Sequence record: NC_071039.1 | Reading direction: 5' to 3' (one strand) | Length of the DNA stretch: 64,000 nt | Part shown: positions 8,023 to 38,554 of the stretch, piece by piece | Position numbering within the stretch: the stretch's first letter is position 1 | Layout of the letters: each line of letters begins with the position of its first letter | Position numbers and translations under genes: made by a program | The notes under the pieces: model-generated | Database searches by the model: none | The model's input: only the letters and a program-made list of their open reading frames with translations | What the model was told of the DNA's origin: nothing

Positions 8023-8207
8023 GTTTCCAAATTCAATTTTAGGCACAAACTCGGGTCCGCATTTGCATTTTGCATTTACATTTTGTGTTCTGAGTGTATA
8101 TGCAAAATGCAATCGCGCATGTTGTCGATGCATTGGCTAATCTTTTATTTTTGATAGTTTAGAAAAGATTAAGAACAGAAACTATCTGTAAATTAATAAA
8201 AATAACA

Positions 8208-8236
8208 TTTACATTACATACACATATGCATATACT
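8208..8236 (+). promoter_or_regulatory. sigma70-type promoter
   Basis: TTTACA-17-TATACT. Confidence 0.6.
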
Positions 8237-8242
8237 ATATAC

Positions 8243-8520
8243 AAGTTATGCGCTGTTGCATACGTAAATACCTCCTATGTTGTTTAGATATGTCGATTCT
8301 GGTATAACCAGATAGACCTAAGGATGATGCTAGTGATTCCTTAGTATTGTATATTCTAGCTGAGTATAAAGAGTAAGGGGCTTTATACAAATAACAATTC
8401 CTTAGGCAAGATATACCGCTCCGTTGTGCTGACGAGCATAATTTGCCCAGATACAGAGCACGTGACTGTTCTGAGGAGCATTTATATCAGAAAGGCAGAC
8501 TTATGTTTGCCTTTCTTTTT
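8243..8520 (+). ncRNA. Candidate sRNA of about 280 nt (RNA-B)
   Basis: Promoter upstream, no ORF, hairpins 8318-24/8338-44, 8364-71/8381-88, 8418-22/8475-79; ends in terminator agaaaggcagac-ttat-gtttgcctttct-tttt. Confidence 0.6.
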
Positions 8521-12551: not shown

Positions 12552-12809
12552 ATGCCAAAACTTTACGTTAACAAAAAACATGATACCATTTATCTTCAAT
12601 TAGATCATTTCTCATCTAATACTGTATCTCCAATTAATTATAACGAAGATGTAGAATATGTAATTGATAGGATCCGTAGTCTGCACAAATCCGGCTTCGG
12701 ATTTAGTCATATGAATACTCTACAAGAATATCTTACGGCAAGAACAGAACAGGATAAGAAGTTTAAGCTTAAAGTAGAAGACTTTGAAGTAGTATCATTT
12801 AAGATTTAA
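12552..12809 (+). CDS. Hypothetical protein, 85 aa
   Basis: ORF coupled to upstream gene. Confidence 0.75.
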   Translation: MPKLYVNKKHDTIYLQLDHFSSNTVSPINYNEDVEYVIDRIRSLHKSGFGFSHMNTLQEYLTARTEQDKKFKLKVEDFEVVSFKI

Positions 12810-12830: not shown

Positions 12831-12859
12831 TTGACATTTGATGTGTATACTAGTATAAT
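12831..12859 (+). promoter_or_regulatory. Perfect-consensus sigma70 promoter
   Basis: TTGACA-17-TATAAT. Confidence 0.85.
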
Positions 12860-12865
12860 TTGCTC

Positions 12866-13398
12866 ATGCTGTCGTAACAGCTACTTTGTTCCATTTACAA
12901 GCAGCTCTGTTCCATTACTGGATATTGGTAGTAGAAACTATCCCCATCGTGCCCACAGTATTGTTCTGTTAGAGACAGATTAAAGCATACAAAAGTGGGT
13001 TATTTAAATTATGATTTTGGGTGCTGAAGTATAGTCGTTAGACAAGGATATGTCTAATGTTGCAAAGGACTATGCGAAACGTATTATATATCTTATCCGA
13101 TATTAGATATGTAATAAAAGGATGAAGCTCTGGTAGAAACAGAGTGTAATTCTTGCTTGTATTTCACACGGATATACAAAAGAATATACACACCAACTTC
13201 AGCATTGATGTAAATTTTCTAGCATAGGTATATAACATCGATGTTCCGGGATTCATTGGAAACAATGAGAGAATGATGTAATCTGAGGAAAAAGGTCCCC
13301 GCCTCGTCCATATTACGAAATGGTTTTGAGTACTTATGCCCTCGTCCTATATTGGCATATGGGTTTTATATTTCTCCCGTAATTACGGGAGAATATAA
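12866..13398 (+). ncRNA. Candidate large structured ncRNA of about 530 nt (RNA-C)
   Basis: Consensus promoter, no ORF of 60 aa or more, long-range helix 13022-30/13196-204 enclosing several hairpins, GAAA tetraloop hairpin 13253-68, terminal hairpin 13372-93. Confidence 0.65.
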
Positions 13399-13720
13399 TT
13401 TCCTGAACCTACTTGGAAATGGACGCTTCTGCTGTGCAAAGCACAGCATCTAAGGGCCTTCACCCTTACCGCTAAGAGCAAGAGCAAAAGCAATATAATT
13501 ACAAATAAGAATTAATTATTGTTTAGTTTTATCGTAATGAATATGAAGATAAAAACTAAACAATAATTCACATGTAGCGTTAGCTACTGTGAATATCTAC
13601 TATAGTATTAACCATATATGTATACAAGGGCATAATATGACTATTACTTGTTGACAATATGATATATGTGTTACACTGTGTAAATGTACATTACAATGTT
13701 TTGATTATTAGGAACATACT

Positions 13721-14305
13721 ATGTCATTATCTTTGACTGCTGCTATTAATCGATATACTAGTCTAATAGAAGAAAATTTCAAAATAAATTATCTGAGGCA
13801 GTTTGAGTCAGGATATATCTCGTATAAATTACTAAGAAATAAAACATTCATACATACTGAAATATCACATGGACGTGATTATATAAAGGTAATTATTTCT
13901 TATACATATATAGAAAATAATGTTGAATTAGATATAAAATCATCTATTGTACATTCGTATATTTCTACTACTGATTGCTCTAAATTTAGAGTAGGAGATA
14001 TAAGAATGTTTTACGATTCAGTTCCTCGTGGAAATGTTTTTAATATTAAAGAGAATACTCAAGTTAGCTGGGCAACAGCTAATATTGGAATTCACGAGAA
14101 TCCGTTTAATCTTAATTATATTTCGAACAATAAGTATATTCGATTAGAAACAGGAGATATATTTGTCTGTATTAATGATAGTATGGTAAATGAACTACAA
14201 GAACATATGCATGTTCATTCTATATGTACTGACAAAACAAAGAAGTTTTATGTAAGAGAAATTGATTTAAATATGCTACATTACAAAAAACACATTATGG
14301 AATAA
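13721..14305 (+). CDS. Hypothetical protein, 194 aa
   Basis: AGGA RBS, long ORF. Confidence 0.8.
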   Translation: MSLSLTAAINRYTSLIEENFKINYLRQFESGYISYKLLRNKTFIHTEISHGRDYIKVIISYTYIENNVELDIKSSIVHSYISTTDCSKFRVGDIRMFYDSVPRGNVFNIKENTQVSWATANIGIHENPFNLNYISNNKYIRLETGDIFVCINDSMVNELQEHMHVHSICTDKTKKFYVREIDLNMLHYKKHIME

Positions 14306-15573: not shown

Positions 15574-15700
15574 TTCGTTTGCTATACGTACTAATACGTT
15601 GTATACTGTTAGTATGTATAGCAAAAGTAACATATAACGTTTTGATTTAATGGACCCCTAATATGAAAAAAGAATTTGAATTGAGGTGCCCTACGAGTAG

Positions 15701-16195
15701 GTGTTCGAGATGGAGCAAATAGTGAATATGCGAGAAGTGACATTTCTTTCCGCAGTGGATGCCAGCAAGATCGAGACGCCGAGCAACGTCATCAGCATCG
15801 GCAGCAAGGGTGATTGGTATGCCTTTGCCTGCGATCACAAGCGCGTTCTGCGGCTGGAGTTTGATGACGTAGACGGATACGTGGGAAGCGATGGCTTTCG
15901 AGTGTTCAGCCACATTGACGCCAAGCAGATCCACGACTTCGTGAACGAGTGTGGTGATGAACCGATCATTGTTCACTGCCAAGCAGGCATGAGCCGATCC
16001 GCTGCGGTTGCCAAGTTCCTGGCTGACAAGCGCGGCTACACCTTGAACCTGTCGAAGCCTTGCTTAGGCACTACACAATTCTACAACCGCCACGTCTACG
16101 GAACGTTGAACCTCAACAACGCCGAAAGCATGAGCGCCTATTACGCAGAGATGGAGCTAGCCGACCGGACGCGTGGCCATACAAAGGAGTCCTGA
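15701..16195 (+). CDS. Protein-tyrosine/dual-specificity phosphatase-like protein
   Basis: Catalytic loop VHCQAGMSRS (HCxxGxxRS) and upstream FDD acid loop; start uncertain. Confidence 0.85.
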   Translation: MFEMEQIVNMREVTFLSAVDASKIETPSNVISIGSKGDWYAFACDHKRVLRLEFDDVDGYVGSDGFRVFSHIDAKQIHDFVNECGDEPIIVHCQAGMSRSAAVAKFLADKRGYTLNLSKPCLGTTQFYNRHVYGTLNLNNAESMSAYYAEMELADRTRGHTKES

Positions 16196-16197
16196 TC

Positions 16198-16497
16198 ATG
16201 CCTGACATGAGAGAAGAGTTTGAAGCCGCAATCTTTGCGGAAGTGAATGAACAGCGGGCTGCTGAAGGTGAATTTGTCCTTCAGCATCCAGAAGGGCTAT
16301 TTGCCCGCGATGACGATGGCTCCTACTTGATCCGTTGGGTCAAGAGCGCATGGTGGGCCTGGCAAGCCAGCCGCGCAGCTCTGAGAGTGGAGTTGCCGAA
16401 ACCTCACCCTGCATTTGAGTACGCACCTAGAGCCAAGGTTTTCAATATAACTGACGTTGAGGTAGCCCTCCAGCAAGCCGGAATCGAGGTGAAGTGA
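16198..16497 (+). CDS. Pseudomonas-prophage-type hypothetical protein, 99 aa
   Basis: AAGGAG RBS; MREEFEA...AWWAWQASRAAL.VELP pattern typical of temperate-phage early genes. Confidence 0.75.
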   Translation: MPDMREEFEAAIFAEVNEQRAAEGEFVLQHPEGLFARDDDGSYLIRWVKSAWWAWQASRAALRVELPKPHPAFEYAPRAKVFNITDVEVALQQAGIEVK

Positions 16498-16644
16498 ATG
16501 AGAACGCCCATCTTCATCGGCGGATCAATTGGCATAGGAATCGCCTATCTGATGAATCCTGAATATCCCGCTATCGCGCTTGCAATGGTGTTTAGCGCGG
16601 GTACCTCATTGTTCATTCACTATCTATCTGAGGTATGGCCATGA
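16498..16644 (+). CDS. Small two-TM membrane protein, 48 aa (not in ORF track)
   Basis: MRTPIFIGGSIGIGIAYLMNPEYPAIALAMVFSAG...; coupled both sides. Confidence 0.6.
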   Translation: MRTPIFIGGSIGIGIAYLMNPEYPAIALAMVFSAGTSLFIHYLSEVWP

Positions 16645-16715
16645 CCGACCACGCAGAGCTGCGGCGGCTGGCTAAAGAAGTGATCCGAATTGAACGAAAT
16701 GAGGATGCAGCATGA
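16641..16715 (+). pseudogene. Truncated Ead/Ea22-like N-terminus, 24 aa
   Basis: MTDHAELRRLAKEVIRIERNEDAA; ATGA overlaps both sides. Confidence 0.5.
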
Positions 16716-17248
16716 GCATTGACTGGAGCAAGGCACCAGAGGGTGCGACGCACTACCAACCGGAATCACGCGGCTTCCATGCGGCATGGTTCCGACTTCA
16801 AGGGGGGAAGGCTCGCGAAATGTGGGTCGTGAGACCCAGCCGCGTGCTTGAGCACATCATCGATCCGACTGTCTTCGACGAGAGCATGCAGAACCTGATC
16901 GCCCGCCCCGTAGAACCTGCCACCTGGAACGGCCAGGGTCTACCGCCGGTTGGCCTGATGGTGGAGTGGAAGGCAGGCCTTGATCACGACTGGCAGCGCG
17001 TAACTGTGCTTGCCTACGCCAATGGCGACGCGTGGTTTCAGCCCGAGGATGGCCCGTCTTTCATCGTCGGCAACCCGGCAAACTTCAGGCGTATCCGCAC
17101 CCCCGAGCAGTTGGCCGCCGAGGAGCGGGAAAAGGCGATTAATCAGATGATTTCTGATGCTGGATACGTAGATCCGAAGATTGGCACATTTGTGGCTATG
17201 CGCAATCTCTACGACGCCGGCTACCGGCGCCGGGAGGAAGGGAAATGA
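16712..17248 (+). CDS. Pseudomonas-phage-type hypothetical protein, 178 aa
   Basis: MSIDWSKAPEGATHY N-terminus and WNGQGLPPVG motif. Confidence 0.85.
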   Translation: MSIDWSKAPEGATHYQPESRGFHAAWFRLQGGKAREMWVVRPSRVLEHIIDPTVFDESMQNLIARPVEPATWNGQGLPPVGLMVEWKAGLDHDWQRVTVLAYANGDAWFQPEDGPSFIVGNPANFRRIRTPEQLAAEEREKAINQMISDAGYVDPKIGTFVAMRNLYDAGYRRREEGK

Positions 17249-17511
17249 GCAGACTGACCGCTGAGCAAGCCCGTGACATAGCGCGAGCGAAAGACGATGT
17301 TGACGCCATCCTCAACGACATCGCCAAAGCAGCCGCAGAAGGAAAGTACGTGTACACTACCCGCGCCTATGGGTTCGGCACAGGCGGCGGACGGCGCAGC
17401 GACGCGATCCTCAAAGTGTTGCGTAGCCTCGGCTACGACTGTGCGGTGCATGCTGAGGGACGCCAGTCTGTTGACCTGTGGCTTGAAGTGAAATGGGGAG
17501 ACAAGCCATGA
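17245..17511 (+). CDS. Prophage-type hypothetical protein, 88 aa
   Basis: ATGA coupling; GC-rich. Confidence 0.8.
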   Translation: MSRLTAEQARDIARAKDDVDAILNDIAKAAAEGKYVYTTRAYGFGTGGGRRSDAILKVLRSLGYDCAVHAEGRQSVDLWLEVKWGDKP

Positions 17512-18107
17512 CCGACACCAACAAAATAAAAAAGCTAGCAAAACTGGCTACGCCGGGTCCGTGGGTTGTCGATGCGCAACAGATAGGCGCCATCTTCAAC
17601 ATCGAAACCGAATCCGGCGACCTATGTATTGCCATGTCGCAGGAGAATCCTGCGCCGACGAAGCTAGAGATGAATGAGCAGCGCAAGGTAAACGCTGAAT
17701 TTATCGCCGCTGCTAACCCCCGAGCCATCCTCGGGCTGATTGCCGAAATAGAGCGGCTGCGCGGTGAAATCGATGCTTACGAAGAAGGCATGCGATCTCT
17801 GGCGTGCAACCTCGGTTCGGGCGGCTACAACTCCGATACGCTGACCCCCGCTCAACTAGTGGATAAGGTCAAGTGGGGTGTAGATAACCTCGCTGAGACG
17901 CAGGGTCGCCTGATGGATGAGGTACGCGCCGAGAACACAGAACTGCGCAAGACGGCAGAACGTTATCGTAAACTTAGGAAAATCACTCCCCGCCAGTTCA
18001 AGAAGATCCAAGAGTCCGCAACGACTGACGGTGGTGACGTCTTCTACTTCCATGCGGATCGGTTTGACGCAGGGCTAGATGCAGCCCTAGAAGGAGCCAA
18101 GCAATGA
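17508..18107 (+). CDS. Ead/Ea22-like protein, 199 aa
   Basis: LAKLATPGPW...NAEFIAAANPRAILGLIAEIERLR signature. Confidence 0.85.
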   Translation: MTDTNKIKKLAKLATPGPWVVDAQQIGAIFNIETESGDLCIAMSQENPAPTKLEMNEQRKVNAEFIAAANPRAILGLIAEIERLRGEIDAYEEGMRSLACNLGSGGYNSDTLTPAQLVDKVKWGVDNLAETQGRLMDEVRAENTELRKTAERYRKLRKITPRQFKKIQESATTDGGDVFYFHADRFDAGLDAALEGAKQ

Positions 18108-18427
18108 CCGATACTAAAAAACTGAAGAAGCTAGCTGAACAGGCTCTCGATTGCAAATTTGATAGCTATGTGGCGTTAATAGCATCAGCAAAACCACAAG
18201 AAATTCTCAGTCTTATAGCTGAGCTGGAACAGTTAAAGGCAGAGAATGACAGATTGCGAGCAGCACTACAGGTTGTTGAATCGGAACTCACCGGTAATAT
18301 CCTCCCACTAACTAACGACCTCGTGAATACAGTAAGCGGCTTGAATAACGGCGCGCATTCATATGACATTTACGAAGAACCCGATTGGGAAATAATAAAT
18401 CAATATTATAAGAATGCAAAGAAATAA
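18104..18427 (+). CDS. Chimeric Ead/Ea22-like protein, 107 aa, with tail duplicated from 14309-14857
   Basis: MTDTKKLKKLAEQA...ASAKPQEILSLIAELEQLK; ends PDWEIINQYYKNAKK. Confidence 0.8.
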   Translation: MTDTKKLKKLAEQALDCKFDSYVALIASAKPQEILSLIAELEQLKAENDRLRAALQVVESELTGNILPLTNDLVNTVSGLNNGAHSYDIYEEPDWEIINQYYKNAKK

Positions 18428-18428
18428 T
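18386..18428 (+). repeat. Direct repeat copy 2
   Basis: tgggaaataataaatcaatattataagaatgcaaagaaataat. Confidence 0.9.
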
Positions 18429-18454
18429 TGAAGTAAAGTGAAAGAACTATCATT

Positions 18455-18712
18455 ATGATCCTACCAGAAGGAGCAGCATACATGAGCCTTAAATATAACG
18501 GATATGTCTTCAACATCGGTATCCTTGGCCAAAACGAAGCTATTAGTGAATACGCCTATCCCACCGATGATCCCGAAAGTGATAAAAAGAAAGCTTTTTT
18601 GGCTGCAATGACAAAATTCGTCGAATCGGATGATTTCGAGAAATTTACTAATCAAATGTATAACAATTTCTCGATTAATGTTCAAGCACTAGTTTCTACG
18701 TCTACAGAGTAA
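18455..18712 (+). CDS. Hypothetical protein, 85 aa
   Basis: ORF. Confidence 0.75.
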   Translation: MILPEGAAYMSLKYNGYVFNIGILGQNEAISEYAYPTDDPESDKKKAFLAAMTKFVESDDFEKFTNQMYNNFSINVQALVSTSTE

Positions 18713-18717
18713 ATTAT

Positions 18718-18771
18718 CAGTATTGATGCTGATATAGACTATTACAGTTTCTTGTATCAGCATCAATACTG
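18718..18771. other. Perfect 17-bp inverted repeat with 20-nt loop
   Basis: cagtattgatgctgata ... tatcagcatcaatactg. Confidence 0.75.
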
Positions 18772-18924
18772 CAAAAAATAAAGAATAATTAATTCCAGTT
18801 CTTTATTCCTGTATTAAGTGACAATAAAGAAGGCATGACTACTTTGTCTTTGATGCTAAGTAGTAATTATCCTTACGATAACTACACACATATCAACTAG
18901 CTATTATGATAGAGGCAAAAATAA

Positions 18925-21707: not shown

Positions 21708-21977
21708 ATGTTTTAAGTATTTGTATCTATAATAGTATCGATATATTTTAATATATTAACTATAAAAATGCATAAACAGATACTGTATAAAGAATAAGGA
21801 AAGATTAGATCTTGTCTGTAATAGTTATATATTTTTCAATGTAATATTCTTCATTTTCATTGCGTGTGTTACAAATTAGATCACAAAAAGTTTTAAAATT
21901 CAGTTTACAGCATGCATAGTTTTACGTATTATAAACACACAAAGCAATACAGCATAACGCATTGTAGGCAACACTAA

Positions 21978-22275
21978 ACGGGAGACACCGTCCCGCAAGC
22001 AGCCCGCGCGCGGCGCAGGCGGCGAGCATACAGGTGTACAAGGTCTAGTAACGTGGAAGGCGCAGCATACCTTTCCCTAAATCGGAAATTGGTCAATGAC
22101 GTACCTGCCCCTAGACACTGCTAGACCTTGCTGCTACAAGCGGGACAGCTACAAAGGTACACTGTATGTATCTATGCTTTACCCCGCTTTGTAGCAGGTC
22201 TTAAAACGGTCTACTGGCATATGCTTTAGTGCTAGTAGGAATCATTAACTTACAACTATTATATGCTTCCTGGAG
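21978..22275. other. GC-rich non-coding element with nested and alternative inverted repeats
   Basis: 22039-48/22121-30, 22027-39/22157-68, 22148-56/22187-95, 21990-96/22140-46; no credible ORF on either strand. Confidence 0.6.
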
Positions 22276-22534
22276 GTGAAGAGTATGCCGCCGCAGCATT
22301 GATTAGATTATATAATATTTATATAATAAATGCCGAAACACCTCTTCGATTCGTTTAAAAGACAGTTGTCTGAATTGAATGTTTTTCGGGCAAAAGGTCC
22401 CTTAGATGGGATTTTTTTGCGGCTGCTAACTAGCAAACGCGAATTAATCTTATTTGCAATTTAAGAAAAATACCAGTTGACTGTAGCTTGCTAACATAGT
22501 ACATTTAACTCATAAATCCGCAGGAGTAGCAGTT

Positions 22535-29138: not shown

Positions 29139-29168
29139 AGGAAAGGGGGCAACTGCCCCTTTCTTTTT
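29137..29168 (+). terminator. Intrinsic terminator (family)
   Basis: aaggaaagggggc-aact-gccccttttctttt. Confidence 0.8.
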
Positions 29169-29357
29169 ATCCATTAATGTGCAAACGCGAATTATTCTTA
29201 TTTGCACAGGGCAGTGAGATGCGAATGCAAACAAGAGGCATTCTTGATACGGTCGGGTGATAATAATTGTTCACAAAAAGAAAAAGCTTGCGTTATGCTA
29301 CACAGGTGCTAGTATGTGTATTGCAGTACCTATAAACATTAATAGCAGGATAAGAAA

Positions 29358-29677
29358 ATGGTTGACTTTAAAGGTTTTAACTGGGACGCACTAGCCCGGA
29401 GGACAACGTTTCCATAGTTTCCATTAAAAATCACTACGAGGAACTCCTACAAAGTTTTGTTGACAACGGCATAGACTATGTGTTAGTCCAGCTGTCCCAG
29501 GAACTGCCGCACTACGAGGATTCAGATTATCCCTGCTACAAATTGGTTGACAAGTATGCAGGATGGATAGTAGGCTGGGACTACTACGGATTTGTTGTGG
29601 AACGCATGGACACGCACCTTTTCTTTGACAACAGCACTGCAAAGGGTGTAATGGACTTCCTGGAAGCCAACGGCTAG
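29358..29677 (+). pseudogene. Probable frameshifted gene of about 106 aa
   Basis: ATG 29358 with AGGA RBS reads MVDFKGFNWDAL, then the -1 frame continues SPEDNVSIVSIKNHYEELLQ... into the ORF-track 29480-29677 frame. Confidence 0.55.
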
Positions 29678-29680
29678 CAC

Positions 29681-29711
29681 AAAAAAGGAAGGGGCGCAAG
29701 CCCTTTTCTTT
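29681..29711 (+). terminator. Intrinsic terminator (family)
   Basis: aaaaaaggaaggggc-gcaa-gcccttttcttt. Confidence 0.75.
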
Positions 29712-30120
29712 TGTCTGCAATTTCTGTGCAAATAAGAACTATTACAGTTGTGGTAAAAGCACAATGCAAATAAGACGCATTCTTGATTAGGCCTGATAAT
29801 AAGTTCTTATTAACAACAAAGAAACTGAATAAGAATAATTCTGAAAAAAATAACCCTGCAGCGTAACACAAAGAGCTTGCAATTTGTAAGCCCTTTTTAA
29901 TATGCATTTGTTAAGATTAGTTCTTATTTGCAATGATAATATCCCCGCCTTACGAATAAGAATTAATCTTAGAACAAATATTCACTTGATTTTTCTCCCA
30001 ATATAGTGTATGTCTATATTAGATAAGATTAAGTCTTGTTTGCTTGTTACATTTTATATGTTGCAATGCTAAGGCAATGATACTATTATATGTACAGTAA
30101 TATAACCCAGGGGATATAAC

Positions 30121-32859: not shown

Positions 32860-32940
32860 GACTAATAATATTCATTTGACAAAAAATAATAATTAAAAAT
32901 ATAATAGCTTAGTGTATAACTTTCCCATATTAGGCTAATT

Positions 32941-35967: not shown

Positions 35968-36031
35968 CCAGTTGCATATTTACAAATATACATGTATGCT
36001 AAAACATATACACAATCATGAGTACATTATC

Positions 36032-36187
36032 ATGACAAAAGAAATTGCTTTTACTGAAGGATTAAAAGCAGGCACTCAAATAAAAGAAGGCAAAGCTATC
36101 CTAACTGACTTCTTTCGATATTTCAATTCCTTACCAATTAATATGAGAACTTCTTTTATTATCGGTATCAAAACCGGTAGAAACTAA
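36032..36187 (+). CDS. Hypothetical protein, about 51 aa
   Basis: ORF; start uncertain. Confidence 0.5.
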   Translation: MTKEIAFTEGLKAGTQIKEGKAILTDFFRYFNSLPINMRTSFIIGIKTGRN

Positions 36188-36274
36188 TAAGCATATTAAT
36201 TTTCATATTTTGGTAGACAAAGGTACTCACTGGATGCATACTGTACACATACAGAACATACTGAGTACAAAGGG

Positions 36275-36544
36275 ATGGATGCGCGTAGTCTGCTTAGCCT
36301 TATCGAAGACCTCCCTATAGCTGTCTTCGGCAGCACAATGGATATTGTTCATCGAGTCAATTTTGAAGCTCTGGACAATGCCGCTCACACCGACGGGGTA
36401 AAAGTCCACGAAGATGGAACCAACTGTTATACAGACGCTTTTGTCGATTGTTGGCTCCGCAGCGTCGAAACAGTTTTGGCCTGTTGCGATTTTGTGACCG
36501 AGGATGCCGCTAAGTGGTATACCGAGCACGGTGTCAAGTTTTGA
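36275..36544 (+). CDS. Hypothetical protein, 89 aa
   Basis: AAGGGA RBS; GC-rich. Confidence 0.7.
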   Translation: MDARSLLSLIEDLPIAVFGSTMDIVHRVNFEALDNAAHTDGVKVHEDGTNCYTDAFVDCWLRSVETVLACCDFVTEDAAKWYTEHGVKF

Positions 36545-36574
36545 CATCCTCTGCCTCGCTTGCAGATAAAAAGG

Positions 36575-36603
36575 TTGACGTAGACTAGCAATGGACACAT
36601 AAT
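36575..36603 (+). promoter_or_regulatory. sigma70 promoter, duplicated at 37972
   Basis: TTGACG-17-CATAAT followed by AATTACAAC. Confidence 0.75.
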
Positions 36604-36637
36604 AATTACAACGCAACCAGCCCAGGAGGGCAAAACT

Positions 36638-36787
36638 ATGTGCAACATCCAATGCATGAACAGCAAAGCAGGCGAGTCCTACGCATGGATTTGGAGCGAT
36701 AGTGATAACGATATCTGCTACGAAGTCATCTTCAGGCATGGCCAGGTCATTACCCAGGTTTGGCTCGGCTATGATATCGTAGCCTAA
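36638..36787 (+). CDS. Hypothetical protein, 49 aa (not in ORF track)
   Basis: AGGAGG RBS; MCNIQCMNSKAGESYAWIWSDSD... Confidence 0.7.
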   Translation: MCNIQCMNSKAGESYAWIWSDSDNDICYEVIFRHGQVITQVWLGYDIVA

Positions 36788-36796
36788 CACCAACTA

Positions 36797-36820
36797 AAGC
36801 CCCGTCCCGGGACGGGGCTT
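36797..36820. terminator. GC-rich hairpin / terminator
   Basis: aagccccgtc-ccgg-gacggggctt. Confidence 0.65.
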
Positions 36821-36837
36821 CACCGAAGGAAAAGATC

Positions 36838-37047
36838 ATGATCGAACAACTGAAAGCCATGCTCGTAGCGCAACGCATGCGCATGAACCAACTCGAAAAA
36901 CTGCGCTACACCGGACGCGTCGCTAGCGAGTTGCATGCCCACGCCAGGGAATTGTGTGAAGCCTTGGAACTGGCAATTGCAAATGCCCAGTGCCTGGAAA
37001 TGCGCAAGTTCGAAGAAGCCGCCCTGCACGCCCTGTTCGCACAATAG
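36838..37047 (+). CDS. Hypothetical helical protein, 69 aa
   Basis: AAGGA RBS. Confidence 0.75.
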   Translation: MIEQLKAMLVAQRMRMNQLEKLRYTGRVASELHAHARELCEALELAIANAQCLEMRKFEEAALHALFAQ

Positions 37048-37080
37048 CCCATCGCGCACAACCCGACAAGGAAACCAAAC

Positions 37081-37572
37081 ATGAGCACCACAATCCCTGA
37101 TTCGATTAACCCGGGTGATCTTCCTGAAATCGGCCAGCCATTGGCTGATGGAACCTTCTTTGCCCGCCAATGGCTCAATGGCAAGGAATACGCCTACGTC
37201 GCTCTCGGCAAAAGCGCCGAGTTCACCGGAGAATGGGGCGAGTATGGGAAGGACGTGGACGGCGCCGTTAGCTATCGAGACGGAGCTTCGAACACGATCG
37301 CCATGGCTGAAGCTGGCAGCCCGATTGCCAAGCAAGCTCTTGAGGTCGGAGAAGGCGTATTCATTCCTTCTGTTCTGGAACTGTCTCTTCTGTTCTCCGC
37401 CAAGCAAGCAGGCGAGCTGTCTGGTTTCGCAGATTGCTGGTACTGGTCGAGTTCGCAGTACTCCGCCTACAGCGCCTTCTACACGTACTTCCACGACGGC
37501 CTCACGCTCAGCTACGTCAAGGACTTCGACTGCCGTGTCCGCCCCGTCCGCAAGATTCTCATTCTTCAGTAA
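37081..37572 (+). CDS. DUF1566 / Lcl-C-terminal (C-type-lectin-like) domain protein, DGR-target type
   Basis: LPEIGQ...GG-type start, DG..NT..M, FIPS..EL, WYWSSSQYS...F.DG....K....RVRPVR. Confidence 0.85.
   Translation: MSTTIPDSINPGDLPEIGQPLADGTFFARQWLNGKEYAYVALGKSAEFTGEWGEYGKDVDGAVSYRDGASNTIAMAEAGSPIAKQALEVGEGVFIPSVLELSLLFSAKQAGELSGFADCWYWSSSQYSAYSAFYTYFHDGLTLSYVKDFDCRVRPVRKILILQ
37459..37551 (+). other. DGR variable-region-like segment
   Basis: 27 of 31 codons end in C, in positions that are AAC in typical template repeats; ends CGTGTCCGCCCCGTCCGC. Confidence 0.55.
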
Positions 37573-37649
37573 TCTAGCCCCGGAGATAACACGATGAACC
37601 TGCACCTCTCCAAGCATTGTCTGCGCCAACGCGGGACCAAGGAACAATC

Positions 37650-37898
37650 ATGAGCATTGCAAGCTACCTCTTGTTGTCCACCATTGTCTTCAACAACAAC
37701 ACCTACGCTCGTTCGACGACAGTGGACACCATTGTGGTTCGTGACCTCAGCAAGGAAGACTGCGAGGCGCTCAAGCGTGAGCGCGAAGCGGTTGTTAAGA
37801 ACATCCAGGCAAGGAACTTCGGTAGCTCTGGTGATACGAGCGGTATCGCCGTGGGCTTTTCCAAACATAGCTGCACAAAGATGAAGGGTACGAAATAA
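37650..37898 (+). CDS. Hypothetical protein, 82 aa
   Basis: AAGGA RBS before ATG 37650; preceded by a 19-aa remnant ORF 37594-37653. Confidence 0.7.
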   Translation: MSIASYLLLSTIVFNNNTYARSTTVDTIVVRDLSKEDCEALKREREAVVKNIQARNFGSSGDTSGIAVGFSKHSCTKMKGTK

Positions 37899-37971
37899 CT
37901 CAACTGGCCACCGCGAGCAAACATTGCCCGGAAGGTGCTAGCTGACCGCCTGGCGGAACAATAAATAAAAG

Positions 37972-38000
37972 TTGACGTAGCCGAGCGAAGGGCGCATAAT
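37972..38000 (+). promoter_or_regulatory. sigma70 promoter, duplicate of 36575
   Basis: TTGACG-17-CATAAT followed by AATTACAAC. Confidence 0.75.
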
Positions 38001-38038
38001 AATTACAACACAACACAGCAAGCCCCGGAGGCGCAACC

Positions 38039-38239
38039 ATGAGCCAGATCGTAGATGTCAAGCAAATTGCAATTGATGCAAACCGTCGGCCGGCCTACAA
38101 TGCGGTCATGGTGCGCTGGTTGATGCAGGAAGCTGAATTGCACCGTAGCTGTGGGCGCACCGCTACCCTGTTCTGCATCGTTCGCAACCGCCCTGACGGC
38201 ACACAGCGCCAGCTTGTGCAGCTTGTGGCTAGCGAGTAA
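38039..38239 (+). CDS. Hypothetical protein, 66 aa
   Basis: GGAGG RBS. Confidence 0.75.
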   Translation: MSQIVDVKQIAIDANRRPAYNAVMVRWLMQEAELHRSCGRTATLFCIVRNRPDGTQRQLVQLVASE

Positions 38240-38269
38240 CCTCAATCACCCTATGCCCGGGAGGCCGTC

Positions 38270-38434
38270 ATGAATGCTGCACTGGCCAGACTTCAAAACG
38301 AACGTTGCATGTTACTTCGCCGGATGCTTTGCAGCAAATGGCACGGATTCTGTTTTGCAGGTCACCCTTGGGCAGAACAAGCCCGCAATCTGCACAACGA
38401 ATCCAAGTGCATCCGAGAACATCACAGTAAGTAA
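38270..38434 (+). CDS. Hypothetical protein, 54 aa (preferred over ORF-track 38274-38495)
   Basis: GGAGG RBS correctly spaced to ATG 38270; MNAALARLQNERCMLLRR... Confidence 0.55.
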   Translation: MNAALARLQNERCMLLRRMLCSKWHGFCFAGHPWAEQARNLHNESKCIREHHSK

Positions 38435-38554
38435 TCCAATCCCACTGGATCTTACTGAGGATAAGATAATGACCTACGCAGAACATAGAAGCTAGTCATT
38501 ATCTTTCCAATAATGAAGTTAATTTTCAAAATGCAGGCAAGCAGGAGAACTAAA

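Follow-up and report, generated by a model that had tools for sequence, protein, structure and literature searches.

A Putative Structured Non-coding RNA Gene in the Terminal Repeat of Pseudomonas Phage PA5oct Is One of Three Paralogous Cassettes in Wroclawvirus Genomes

Results

A Consensus Promoter in an Unannotated Gap

The sequence analyzed comprises nucleotides 1-64000 of Pseudomonas phage vB_PaeM_PA5oct (MK797984.1; identical coordinates), hereafter called the window. Within it, an unannotated gap of 911 bp separates gp49 (12552-12809) from gp50 (13721-14305); the gap belongs to the 39-kb terminal repeat of PA5oct. An earlier note on this DNA had placed a non-coding RNA of about 530 nt, RNA-C, in the gap. 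Sequence comparison supported a structured non-coding RNA gene on the + strand behind a consensus sigma-70 promoter. RNA-C proved to be one of three paralogous cassettes that occur in every Wroclawvirus genome and share a folded 5' domain, sequence islands, and a terminal hairpin. The upstream part of the locus contains the following features.

12831-12859, + strand: sigma-70 promoter of RNA-C, with -35 TTGACA (12831-12836), a 17-nt spacer, and -10 TATAAT (12854-12859)
12868-12881, + strand: 5'-proximal hairpin, GCUGU-CGUA-ACAGC

The perfect TTGACA-17-TATAAT promoter of the earlier note was present at 12831-12859, and transcription is predicted to start near A12866. Perfect matches to TTGACA/TATAAT occurred twice in 64 kb compared with 0.28 expected, and the RNA-C promoter was the sole 12/12 match within 7-24 kb. 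The other perfect promoter of the 64-kb window (TTGACA-N18-TATAAT, 32876-32905) lies directly upstream of gp96 (32941). For comparison among orthologues, ten Wroclawvirus genomes (PA5oct plus nine others) were aligned, and eight metagenomic contigs were added later. Both hexamers of the RNA-C promoter were unchanged in all ten genomes, and variation was seen in the spacer (12850) and at 12862/12863.

Three Paralogous Cassettes per Genome

Comparison by blastn showed that 12900-13029 matched genome positions 75989-76117 with 84% identity (E 4e-34) and that 12897-13024 matched 246148-246270 with 79% identity over 128 nt (E 2e-25). Both loci, at 75.8 kb and 246 kb, also matched another block of RNA-C, 13117-13145.

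Genome 75798-76805 (outside the 64-kb window; locus L054, 11798-12805): third copy, unannotated, about 970 nt
Genome 246116..246734: ncRNA004 (EST35_0353, "putative lncRNA"), 619 nt, defined by RNA sequencing (RNA-seq) (Lood et al. 2020, PMC7318152)

The second of these is a published RNA. In the RNA-seq-curated annotation of PA5oct, Lood et al. (2020) listed four transcribed regions devoid of open reading frames (ORFs), namely ncRNA001 (8263..8498), ncRNA002 (21951..22401), ncRNA003 at 103 kb, and ncRNA004 (246116..246734) (PMC7318152); five are listed in a 2018 preprint (10.1101/406421). ncRNA004 was described as lacking similarity to anything, and no structure was reported for it (PMC7318152). 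Three tiny ORFs annotated across the 75.8-kb copy (EST35_0143-0145) are probably spurious.

A covariance model of the common domain detected exactly three copies in 286,783 bp; their scores were 169, 158, and 149 bits, and no other match exceeded 16.8 bits. No fourth copy was found with this model in the PA5oct genome. All three loci were present in all ten Wroclawvirus genomes at 98.5-99.7% identity. Each copy lies behind a sigma-70-type promoter. That of the 75.8-kb copy is a perfect TTGACA-17-TATAAT with extended TG (genome 75798-75826), and that of ncRNA004 reads TTGACA-17-TAAACT (genome 246069-246097), about 19 nt before the annotated start. The proteins encoded beside the three loci showed neither paralogy with one another nor Pfam domains. 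Because these neighbors are unrelated, the RNA cassette alone is deduced to be the duplicated unit.

Unlike metaSPAdes scaffolds, which read through, all seven Logan (k=31) contigs bearing gp50 had 12924 or 12925 as their first position. Since the 30-mer 12924-12953 is identical in the three paralogues, these ends are k=31 assembly breaks, which recur systematically in Wroclawvirus genomes. Position 12924 was accordingly rejected as a transcript 5' end; it is a repeat artifact of assembly.

A Conserved Four-way Junction

The 5' part of RNA-C is occupied by a domain designated M1, which is the best-supported part of the RNA and which is followed closely by a two-tier hairpin.

12902-13026, + strand: conserved 5' domain M1, a four-way junction (about 130 nt) recognized by homology, independent folds, and covariation
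12902-12905 / 13023-13026, + strand: closing helix P0 of M1, with two compensatory pairs
12911-12914 / 12919-12922, + strand: hairpin P1 of M1, with a variable loop that includes 12918
12927-12932 / 12937-12942, + strand: hairpin P2 of M1, loop AGAA
12943-12950 / 13011-13021, + strand: long arm of M1
12951-12956 / 12995-13000, + strand: helix B of M1, following the long-arm helix
12958-12964 / 12985-12990, + strand: helix B2 of M1, following helix B
12965-12970 / 12974-12979, + strand: hairpin C of M1, capping the arm after B2
13029-13075, + strand: two-tier hairpin after M1, lower stem 13029-13036 / 13068-13075, upper stem 13037-13044 / 13051-13058, loop AGGAUA (13045-13050)

Two blocks of M1 are common to the three paralogues: a 35-nt block (12918-12952), in which a single base differs in ncRNA004, and a 26-nt block (12999-13024), which is identical in all three. 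The helices between the invariant blocks differ in sequence, as is evident from helix B, which reads GCCCAC/GUGGGU, GCUGUUA/UAACAGU, and GCCUUU/AAAGGU in the respective paralogues. When folded independently, the three 5' domains reached the identical four-way-junction topology. An AAGGA-type loop was found in all three paralogues, 3-9 nt past P0 and on covarying stems of different sequence; 11 of the 16 pairs in the two stems of the 13029-13075 hairpin were changed on both sides in the paralogue comparison. Both paralogues also carry a 5'-proximal hairpin, of unrelated sequence, and the one at 12868-12881 may act as a 5' stabilizer.

Covariation was analyzed at two levels. Among the orthologues, RNAalifold predicted 232 pairs for the ten genomes, and two of them were compensatory. 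C12954-G12997 is replaced by U-A in phage 30-3, with both changes again occurring together in a metagenomic contig (L050), and C13432-G13446 is replaced by A-U in Deifobo. Wobble-compatible single changes were seen at 12979 and 12985, and these are compatible with the + strand only. The pairs with compensatory or wobble changes were already contained in the minimum free energy (MFE) structure of the single sequence. When the variable columns were permuted, the mean number of compensatory pairs was 0.0098 (P = 0.0098 for one or more), the two observed were not reached in any of 5000 permutations, and slid controls gave zero.

The second, independent test used a model built from the RNA-C orthologues only, to which the paralogues were aligned and on which pairs were then counted. 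On this structure, 98.4% of the paralogue cells were paired, compared with 33-47% when partners were slid by 1-3 columns; shuffles paired 84.9 ± 1.0% of cells, and none of 500 reached the observed value. Both sides were changed in 21 of 56 pairs (1-4 in slid controls), and the covariation score was 0.358 compared with 0.016-0.082 after sliding.

Folding energy pointed in the same direction. The 533 nt of 12866-13398 gave an MFE of -146.3 kcal/mol (z = -3.95; 0 of 100 shuffles folded as well), and in the 250-nt segment 13000-13249 the z-score was -6.4 on the + strand versus -3.5 on the - strand. However, chance roughly accounts for a 9-bp inverted repeat in about 500 nt, and other spacers of the phage are equally extreme, so that fold energy alone is weak proof. 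The case for an RNA-C structure is made at the sequence level by conservation and covariation.

Every helix listed in the earlier note exists where it had been placed, and most of its local hairpins were right: paralogue covariation backs atagtc/gactat with ttagaca/tgtctaa, gctctg/cagagt, ttgatgt/acatcga, and the terminal hairpin. The 5' domain 12902-13026 and the three-copy family had been missed, and one assignment had to be revised. The 9-bp long-range helix tgctgaagt (13022-13030) / acttcagca (13196-13204) had been taken to close a multiloop, but its 5' strand overlaps P0 (12902-12905 / 13023-13026). In a 535-nt RNA, pairing probabilities were about 0.6 for P0 and about 0.07 for the 9-bp helix, which cost 4 kcal/mol when enforced; the energies of the two were equal when the context was extended to 755 nt. 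The 9-bp helix shows no variation, and its counterpart in ncRNA004 has only 4 bp, whereas P0 has two compensatory pairs. Because P0 covaries, pairs more readily, and uses the same nucleotides, the 9-bp helix was not accepted as the closing helix. It may represent an alternative conformer in the modeled ensemble.

Sequence Constraint

Across the ten genomes, 6 of 401 sites (1.5%) were variable in the RNA-C core (12998-13398) and 0 of 100 at 13501-13600. The genes flanking RNA-C have 4.5-6.7% variable sites, with 15.4% in gp50, and third codon positions vary at about 10-14%. In a seven-genome alignment of 20 kb (5-25 kb), the five longest invariant runs were 8056-8241, 12998-13162, 8243-8401, 13447-13604, and 13213-13370. 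Three of the five fall at the RNA-C locus and the other two in or beside ncRNA001, which makes these the two most constrained stretches. The sequence of RNA-C is thus under strong purifying selection.

Further observations were made in the same alignments. The stretch 8040-8460, which includes ncRNA001 and its promoter (8208-8236), is the most invariant of 5-25 kb, with 2-5 variable sites per 400 nt versus a median of 20; the conservation of ncRNA002 (21951-22401) was not notable. gp50 is hypervariable (90 of 585 sites in ten genomes, 39/19/32 at codon positions 1/2/3), a pattern suggestive of diversifying selection acting on this early protein. At 15600-18900, coverage of the seven-genome alignment collapses and genes vary by strain, marking a gene-content hotspot.

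Coding Potential

No ORF of at least 60 amino acids was found on either strand between the end of gp49 (12809) and the start of gp50 (13721). The earlier claim of more than 800 bp without such an ORF therefore holds across the 911-bp gap. The largest ORF in the gap comprises 50 amino acids and begins within the -35 box of RNA-C. One could nevertheless regard the locus as a decayed coding region, as the messenger RNA of a small protein, or as an AT-rich spacer in which structure has arisen by chance. In the records of Paride, Deifobo, Ettore, Cassandra, and PAC2, 3-4 ORFs of 30-55 amino acids are called, on both strands, within 12831-13493, and a conserved AUG at 13011 starts ORFs of 7, 14, and 50 codons across the three paralogues. 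Past five codons, however, the paralogue ORFs are wholly different in length and sequence, and all three codon positions are conserved, more strongly than in genuine genes. The compensatory changes keep helices, not codons, and chance structure is ruled out by the variable-column permutation and by the paralogue covariation tests. One of the ORFs annotated in the five records begins within the -35 box, and the small ORFs inside RNA-C are likely annotation artifacts. The view that RNA-C is not an RNA gene is largely refuted and retains a barely appreciable probability.

Body of RNA-C and Its GGA Motifs

Downstream of M1 and the two-tier hairpin, variable hairpins alternate with islands of conserved sequence.

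13082-13116, + strand: AU-rich 12-bp hairpin (atatct/agatat of the earlier note), lone substitution (13103) in the loop
13117-13154, + strand: island M2 (AAAGGAUGnnGCUCUGGUnGAAA), with hairpin 13127-13132 / 13140-13145 and lower stem 13118-13123 / 13149-13154
13157-13179, + strand: hairpin UUGUAU / AUACAA with hypervariable loop
13192-13197, + strand: invariant island ACCAAC, collinear in all three paralogues
13204-13242, + strand: hairpin ttgatgt/acatcga, replaced in ncRNA004 by an unrelated 11-bp hairpin at the equivalent position
13244-13268, + strand: island M3 (UUCCGGGA..UUGGAAA), including the GAAA-loop hairpin 13253-13258 / 13263-13268
13298-13305, + strand: G+C-rich island M4 (CCCGCCUC), common to the three paralogues

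The islands M2, ACCAAC, UUCCGG..UUG(G)AAA, and CCCGC(C)UC follow in identical order in the three RNAs, with unrelated hairpins between them. M2 is confined to the three RNA loci in the PA5oct genome. ACCAAC is complementary to UUGGU of M1, and a tertiary pairing between them is possible on this basis. Four of the seven variable core sites (13163, 13166, 13168, and 13171) are confined to the loop of the 13157-13179 hairpin.

The exposed GGA of the AAGGA loop raised the idea that the RNAs are decoys for RsmA/RsmN of the CsrA family in the manner of RsmY/RsmZ, which bind through GGA in hairpin loops. Directly after M1, all three paralogues retain this loop on a 7-bp stem that covaries, and AAAGGAUG is present within M2. 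The loop context in RNA-C, ACAAGGAUAUGU, resembles the CsrA consensus from systematic evolution of ligands by exponential enrichment, and is treated as a lead only. GGA counts of 9, 10, and 13 were, however, not above those of shuffles (P = 0.16-0.33), and the reverse strand has 9 each. Moreover, the GGA of M2 is base-paired in all three RNAs, the loop GGA at 13170-13172 is absent in Deifobo (G13171A), and a single conserved exposed GGA per RNA remains. A role as Rsm decoy is very unlikely.

The Probable 3' End and Downstream Palindrome

13366-13398, + strand: terminal hairpin, core 13372-13393 (UUCUCCCGU-AAUU-ACGGGAGAA), weak U tail
13430-13448, + strand: downstream 8-bp hairpin, loop flipping between AAA/GAA and UUC/UUU among genomes
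13514-13594, no strand assigned: long AT-rich palindrome with 17-bp arms (13514-13530 / 13552-13568), then hairpin 13566-13594; invariant (run 13447-13604)

The terminal hairpin has a 9-bp core with 5 G-C pairs, followed by the tail UAUAAUUUCC. It is probably both the 3' end and the terminator of RNA-C, as judged from its homology in style (pyrimidine/purine) to the 3' hairpin of ncRNA004. The annotated end of ncRNA004 lies about 20 nt beyond the hairpin equivalent to 13372-13393; homology to this RNA-seq 3' end supports the length of about 530 nt, ending at the 13366-13398 hairpin, that had been claimed for RNA-C. The terminator hairpin of the 75.8-kb copy has a good U tail, UUUAUGACUUU. A 1-nt deletion at 13371 (Cassandra, 30-2, and ENA scaffold L051) abolishes the bulge of the RNA-C terminal hairpin.

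At all three loci, a small hairpin, a long AT-rich palindrome, and one more hairpin lie downstream of the terminal hairpin. In the small hairpin at 13430-13448, five sequences have a C-U mismatch caused by G13446U, a change that only Deifobo compensates (C13432A); the flipping of its loop resembles the outcome of template switching at a quasi-palindrome. The 75.8-kb and 246-kb copies have a 21-nt palindrome loop in common over different, fully compensated arms. The palindromic arms at 13514-13568 contain no G-U pairs. The palindrome may act at the RNA level, as a processing site, or at the DNA level.

This arrangement raises the question of whether each cassette is a replication origin, in which the folded RNA would prime or open the AT-rich palindrome downstream as ColE1 RNA II or the T4 oriF/oriG transcripts do. 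The phage possesses RNase H and T4-like replication genes, and the three copies are dispersed; at two of them the coding strand switches and the GC skew turns. Downstream of each cassette lie further hairpins and a long, invariant palindrome rich in A+T, and arms devoid of G-U pairs and a flipping loop are compatible with DNA-level hairpins. Nonetheless, neither iterons nor direct repeats were found at the locus, and GC skew merely tracks gene orientation. The strongest constraint and covariation reside in the 5' RNA domain, distant from the AT-rich DNA, and are accompanied by G-U pairs and wobble changes that denote selection on an RNA fold. The probable terminator hairpin, furthermore, separates the RNA from the palindrome. 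We consider an origin function quite improbable.

Relation to gp50 and to the RNA-seq Data

13651-13677, + strand: candidate gp50 promoter, TTGACA (13651-13656), 15-nt spacer, TGT-TACACT

The hexamers of this candidate are invariant, whereas its spacer and the region after it vary and include a 5-nt indel. From the sequence, gp50 thus appears to have a promoter of its own that would separate it from the RNA-C unit. This bears on the proposal that RNA-C is a cis-acting leader whose 5' domain modifies host RNA polymerase (processive antitermination of the HK022 put kind) or controls read-through into gp50 and onwards. M1 sits 35-155 nt past strong promoters, the 75.8-kb and 246-kb copies lie exactly where blocks of genes switch from the - to the + strand, and the phage, whose genome has many terminators, relies on the RNA polymerase of its host (PMC7318152; 10.1101/406421). 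The weak U tail of the probable RNA-C terminator would also suit a leader. On the other hand, ncRNA004 is an RNA-seq-delimited, discrete RNA of 619 nt followed by about 1 kb without + strand genes (PMC7318152), gp50 carries the conserved promoter-like site, and the genes downstream of the three loci are unrelated. In addition, 0.5-1 kb with collinear islands far exceeds the requirement of a put-type element. A leader function is therefore judged improbable.

Because ncRNA004 was defined by RNA-seq and ends just past the homologous hairpin, at least one member of the family is a discrete transcript. RNA-C had been expected to be "probably one of the most abundant early transcripts"; this found no support: the share of ncRNA004 in phage reads is 0.02-0.08%, and the four published RNAs do not include RNA-C (PMC7318152).

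Database Searches

Rfam covariance models gave no match at the gathering score in the whole 64-kb window, including those for ROOL, GOLLD, 6S, RNase P, transfer-messenger RNA (tmRNA), group I/II introns, ribozymes, and riboswitches; for RNA-C and both paralogues, matches at E up to 10 were unrelated and sub-threshold. ARAGORN detected no transfer RNA or tmRNA genes in the window. The earlier note had been unable to assign RNA-C, and the lack of any known Rfam family agrees with this; its paralogy with the published ncRNA004, however, means that RNA-C is not wholly unassignable.

A blastn search of 50,697 phage records returned the ten Wroclawvirus genomes only (11 records, PA5oct being represented twice), with matches at three places in each genome. 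Distant homologues of the locus were sought in IMG/VR through gp50, without success, and a 16-mer gave chance matches only in IMG/VR. No match was obtained for a 24-mer and a 20-mer in JGI metagenomes or for the 20-mer in IMG/VR and GTDB genomes, and a search of 5.8 billion proteins with gp50 found only relatives of at least 82% identity. RNA-C showed no similarity to ncRNA001 or ncRNA002, and its antisense matches in the phage genome were AT-rich 13-15-mers at chance level. The collection of papers searched contained no discussion of these RNAs beyond the original table of Lood et al.

The terminal repeat has two other unannotated gaps, each about 1 kb long (29139-30120 and 37573-38554), and both lack M1 according to the covariance model. 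The G+C content at about 36000-38000 is 0.50 in a 2-kb bin compared with about 0.33 for the genome, and this segment may be a foreign insert.

Discussion

In the interpretation that we favor, and to which we assign a probability of roughly 0.6, RNA-C (approximately 12866-13400, + strand) is a stand-alone gene whose product is a structured, trans-acting non-coding RNA of about 530 nt. The apparent promoter of gp50 and the discrete RNA-seq ends of ncRNA004 are the reasons for preferring a separate RNA that acts in trans. Host sigma-70 RNA polymerase would transcribe RNA-C from the consensus promoter upon DNA entry, transcription would stop at the 13366-13398 hairpin, and the RNA would then act in trans. 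Junctions and loops that stay invariant while the helices covary suggest that the RNAs share a partner recognizing sequence. This one partner, most likely a host or phage protein, would bind to a surface made up of the invariant junction, loop nucleotides, and islands, and the covarying helices and variable hairpins would serve as scaffold only.

Several points weigh against this interpretation. There is no direct transcript evidence for RNA-C, and the RNA-seq-curated annotation leaves the gap at 12.8-13.7 kb empty. ncRNA004 itself is of low abundance (0.08, 0.03, and 0.02% of phage reads; PMC7318152), and the U tail after the terminal hairpin of RNA-C is weak. The paralogue alignment was fitted to the model and so leans towards structure, and covariation rests on three paralogues and on orthologues that differ by at most 2%, giving few independent events. 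Other intergenic spots of PA5oct have z-scores as extreme as those of RNA-C, and the family was seen nowhere outside Wroclawvirus in the collections scanned. The idea of a trans-acting scaffold that binds a protein is itself an inference.

A more far-reaching, tentative idea, which we regard as doubtful, is that the three cassettes represent a class of phage RNA that is new, large, and multi-domain, on a par with ROOL, GOLLD, and OLE; their four islands, AGAA and AAGGA loops, and invariant junction would form a tertiary fold with a biochemical task in early infection. If so, the task could be catalysis, assembly of multimers, or capture of a host defense or polymerase factor, and the three diverged bodies could represent three specificities.

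The stand-alone RNA gene that we favor would turn the empty 911-bp gap into a gene missed by annotation. RNA-C links a published, uncharacterized "lncRNA" to a third locus that is annotated as three doubtful tiny ORFs. Whereas ncRNA004 itself has been published, the ncRNA004-type family, its three-copy organization, and its structure are previously undescribed, and the structure is the first with covariation support for a PA5oct non-coding RNA. The family is a candidate for Rfam. A conserved "handle" with three diverged bodies is a testable design, in which the invariant blocks offer targets. Jumbo phages are candidates for therapy, and the early functions of their terminal repeats are mostly uncharacterized.

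Comparison with Known RNAs

Among described RNAs, ncRNA004 is the one that shares most with RNA-C: the 5' four-way junction, the AAGGA-loop hairpin, the collinear M2, ACCAAC, UUCCGG.., and CCCGCCUC, the sigma-70-type promoter, the pyrimidine/purine terminal hairpin, and the AT-rich palindrome arrangement downstream. It differs in being about 90 nt longer, in its unalignable variable hairpins, in its weaker -10 element (TAAACT), in its location, which is not inside the terminal repeat but where the coding strand switches, and in having transcript evidence, which RNA-C has not. The 75.8-kb copy resembles RNA-C in its perfect promoter, in M1 (84%), in the equal order of the islands, and in a terminator hairpin, which is strong; at about 970 nt it is larger, with about 120 additional nt before M1 and an insert of about 220 nt after it.

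Like RNA-C, ncRNA001 and ncRNA002 are ORF-less, lie on the + strand of the terminal repeat, and each follow a sigma-70-like promoter; ncRNA001 is equally invariant among genomes. Unlike RNA-C, they lack M1 and any sequence similarity to it, and they are abundant (1.2-5% of phage reads).

HK022 put, ColE1 RNA II, and the T4 oriF/oriG transcripts have no homology to RNA-C and are functional analogies. Like it, they are folded RNAs made by host polymerase directly after strong promoters; put occurs as two paralogous copies, and RNA II measures about 550 nt. In contrast to RNA-C, put is about 70 nt long, cis-acting, and without a discrete 3' end, and RNA II and the T4 ori transcripts need a hybrid-forming origin, which is not an established feature of the RNA-C locus.

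ROOL and GOLLD differ from RNA-C in sequence and structure, to which no match was found. RNA-C is restricted to one phage genus, where it has three diverged paralogues, its conservation is limited to about 180 nt and short islands, and a higher-order assembly is without support here. With ROOL and GOLLD it nevertheless has in common that it is phage-borne, non-coding, and 0.5-1 kb in size, and that it combines many helices with conserved unpaired islands.

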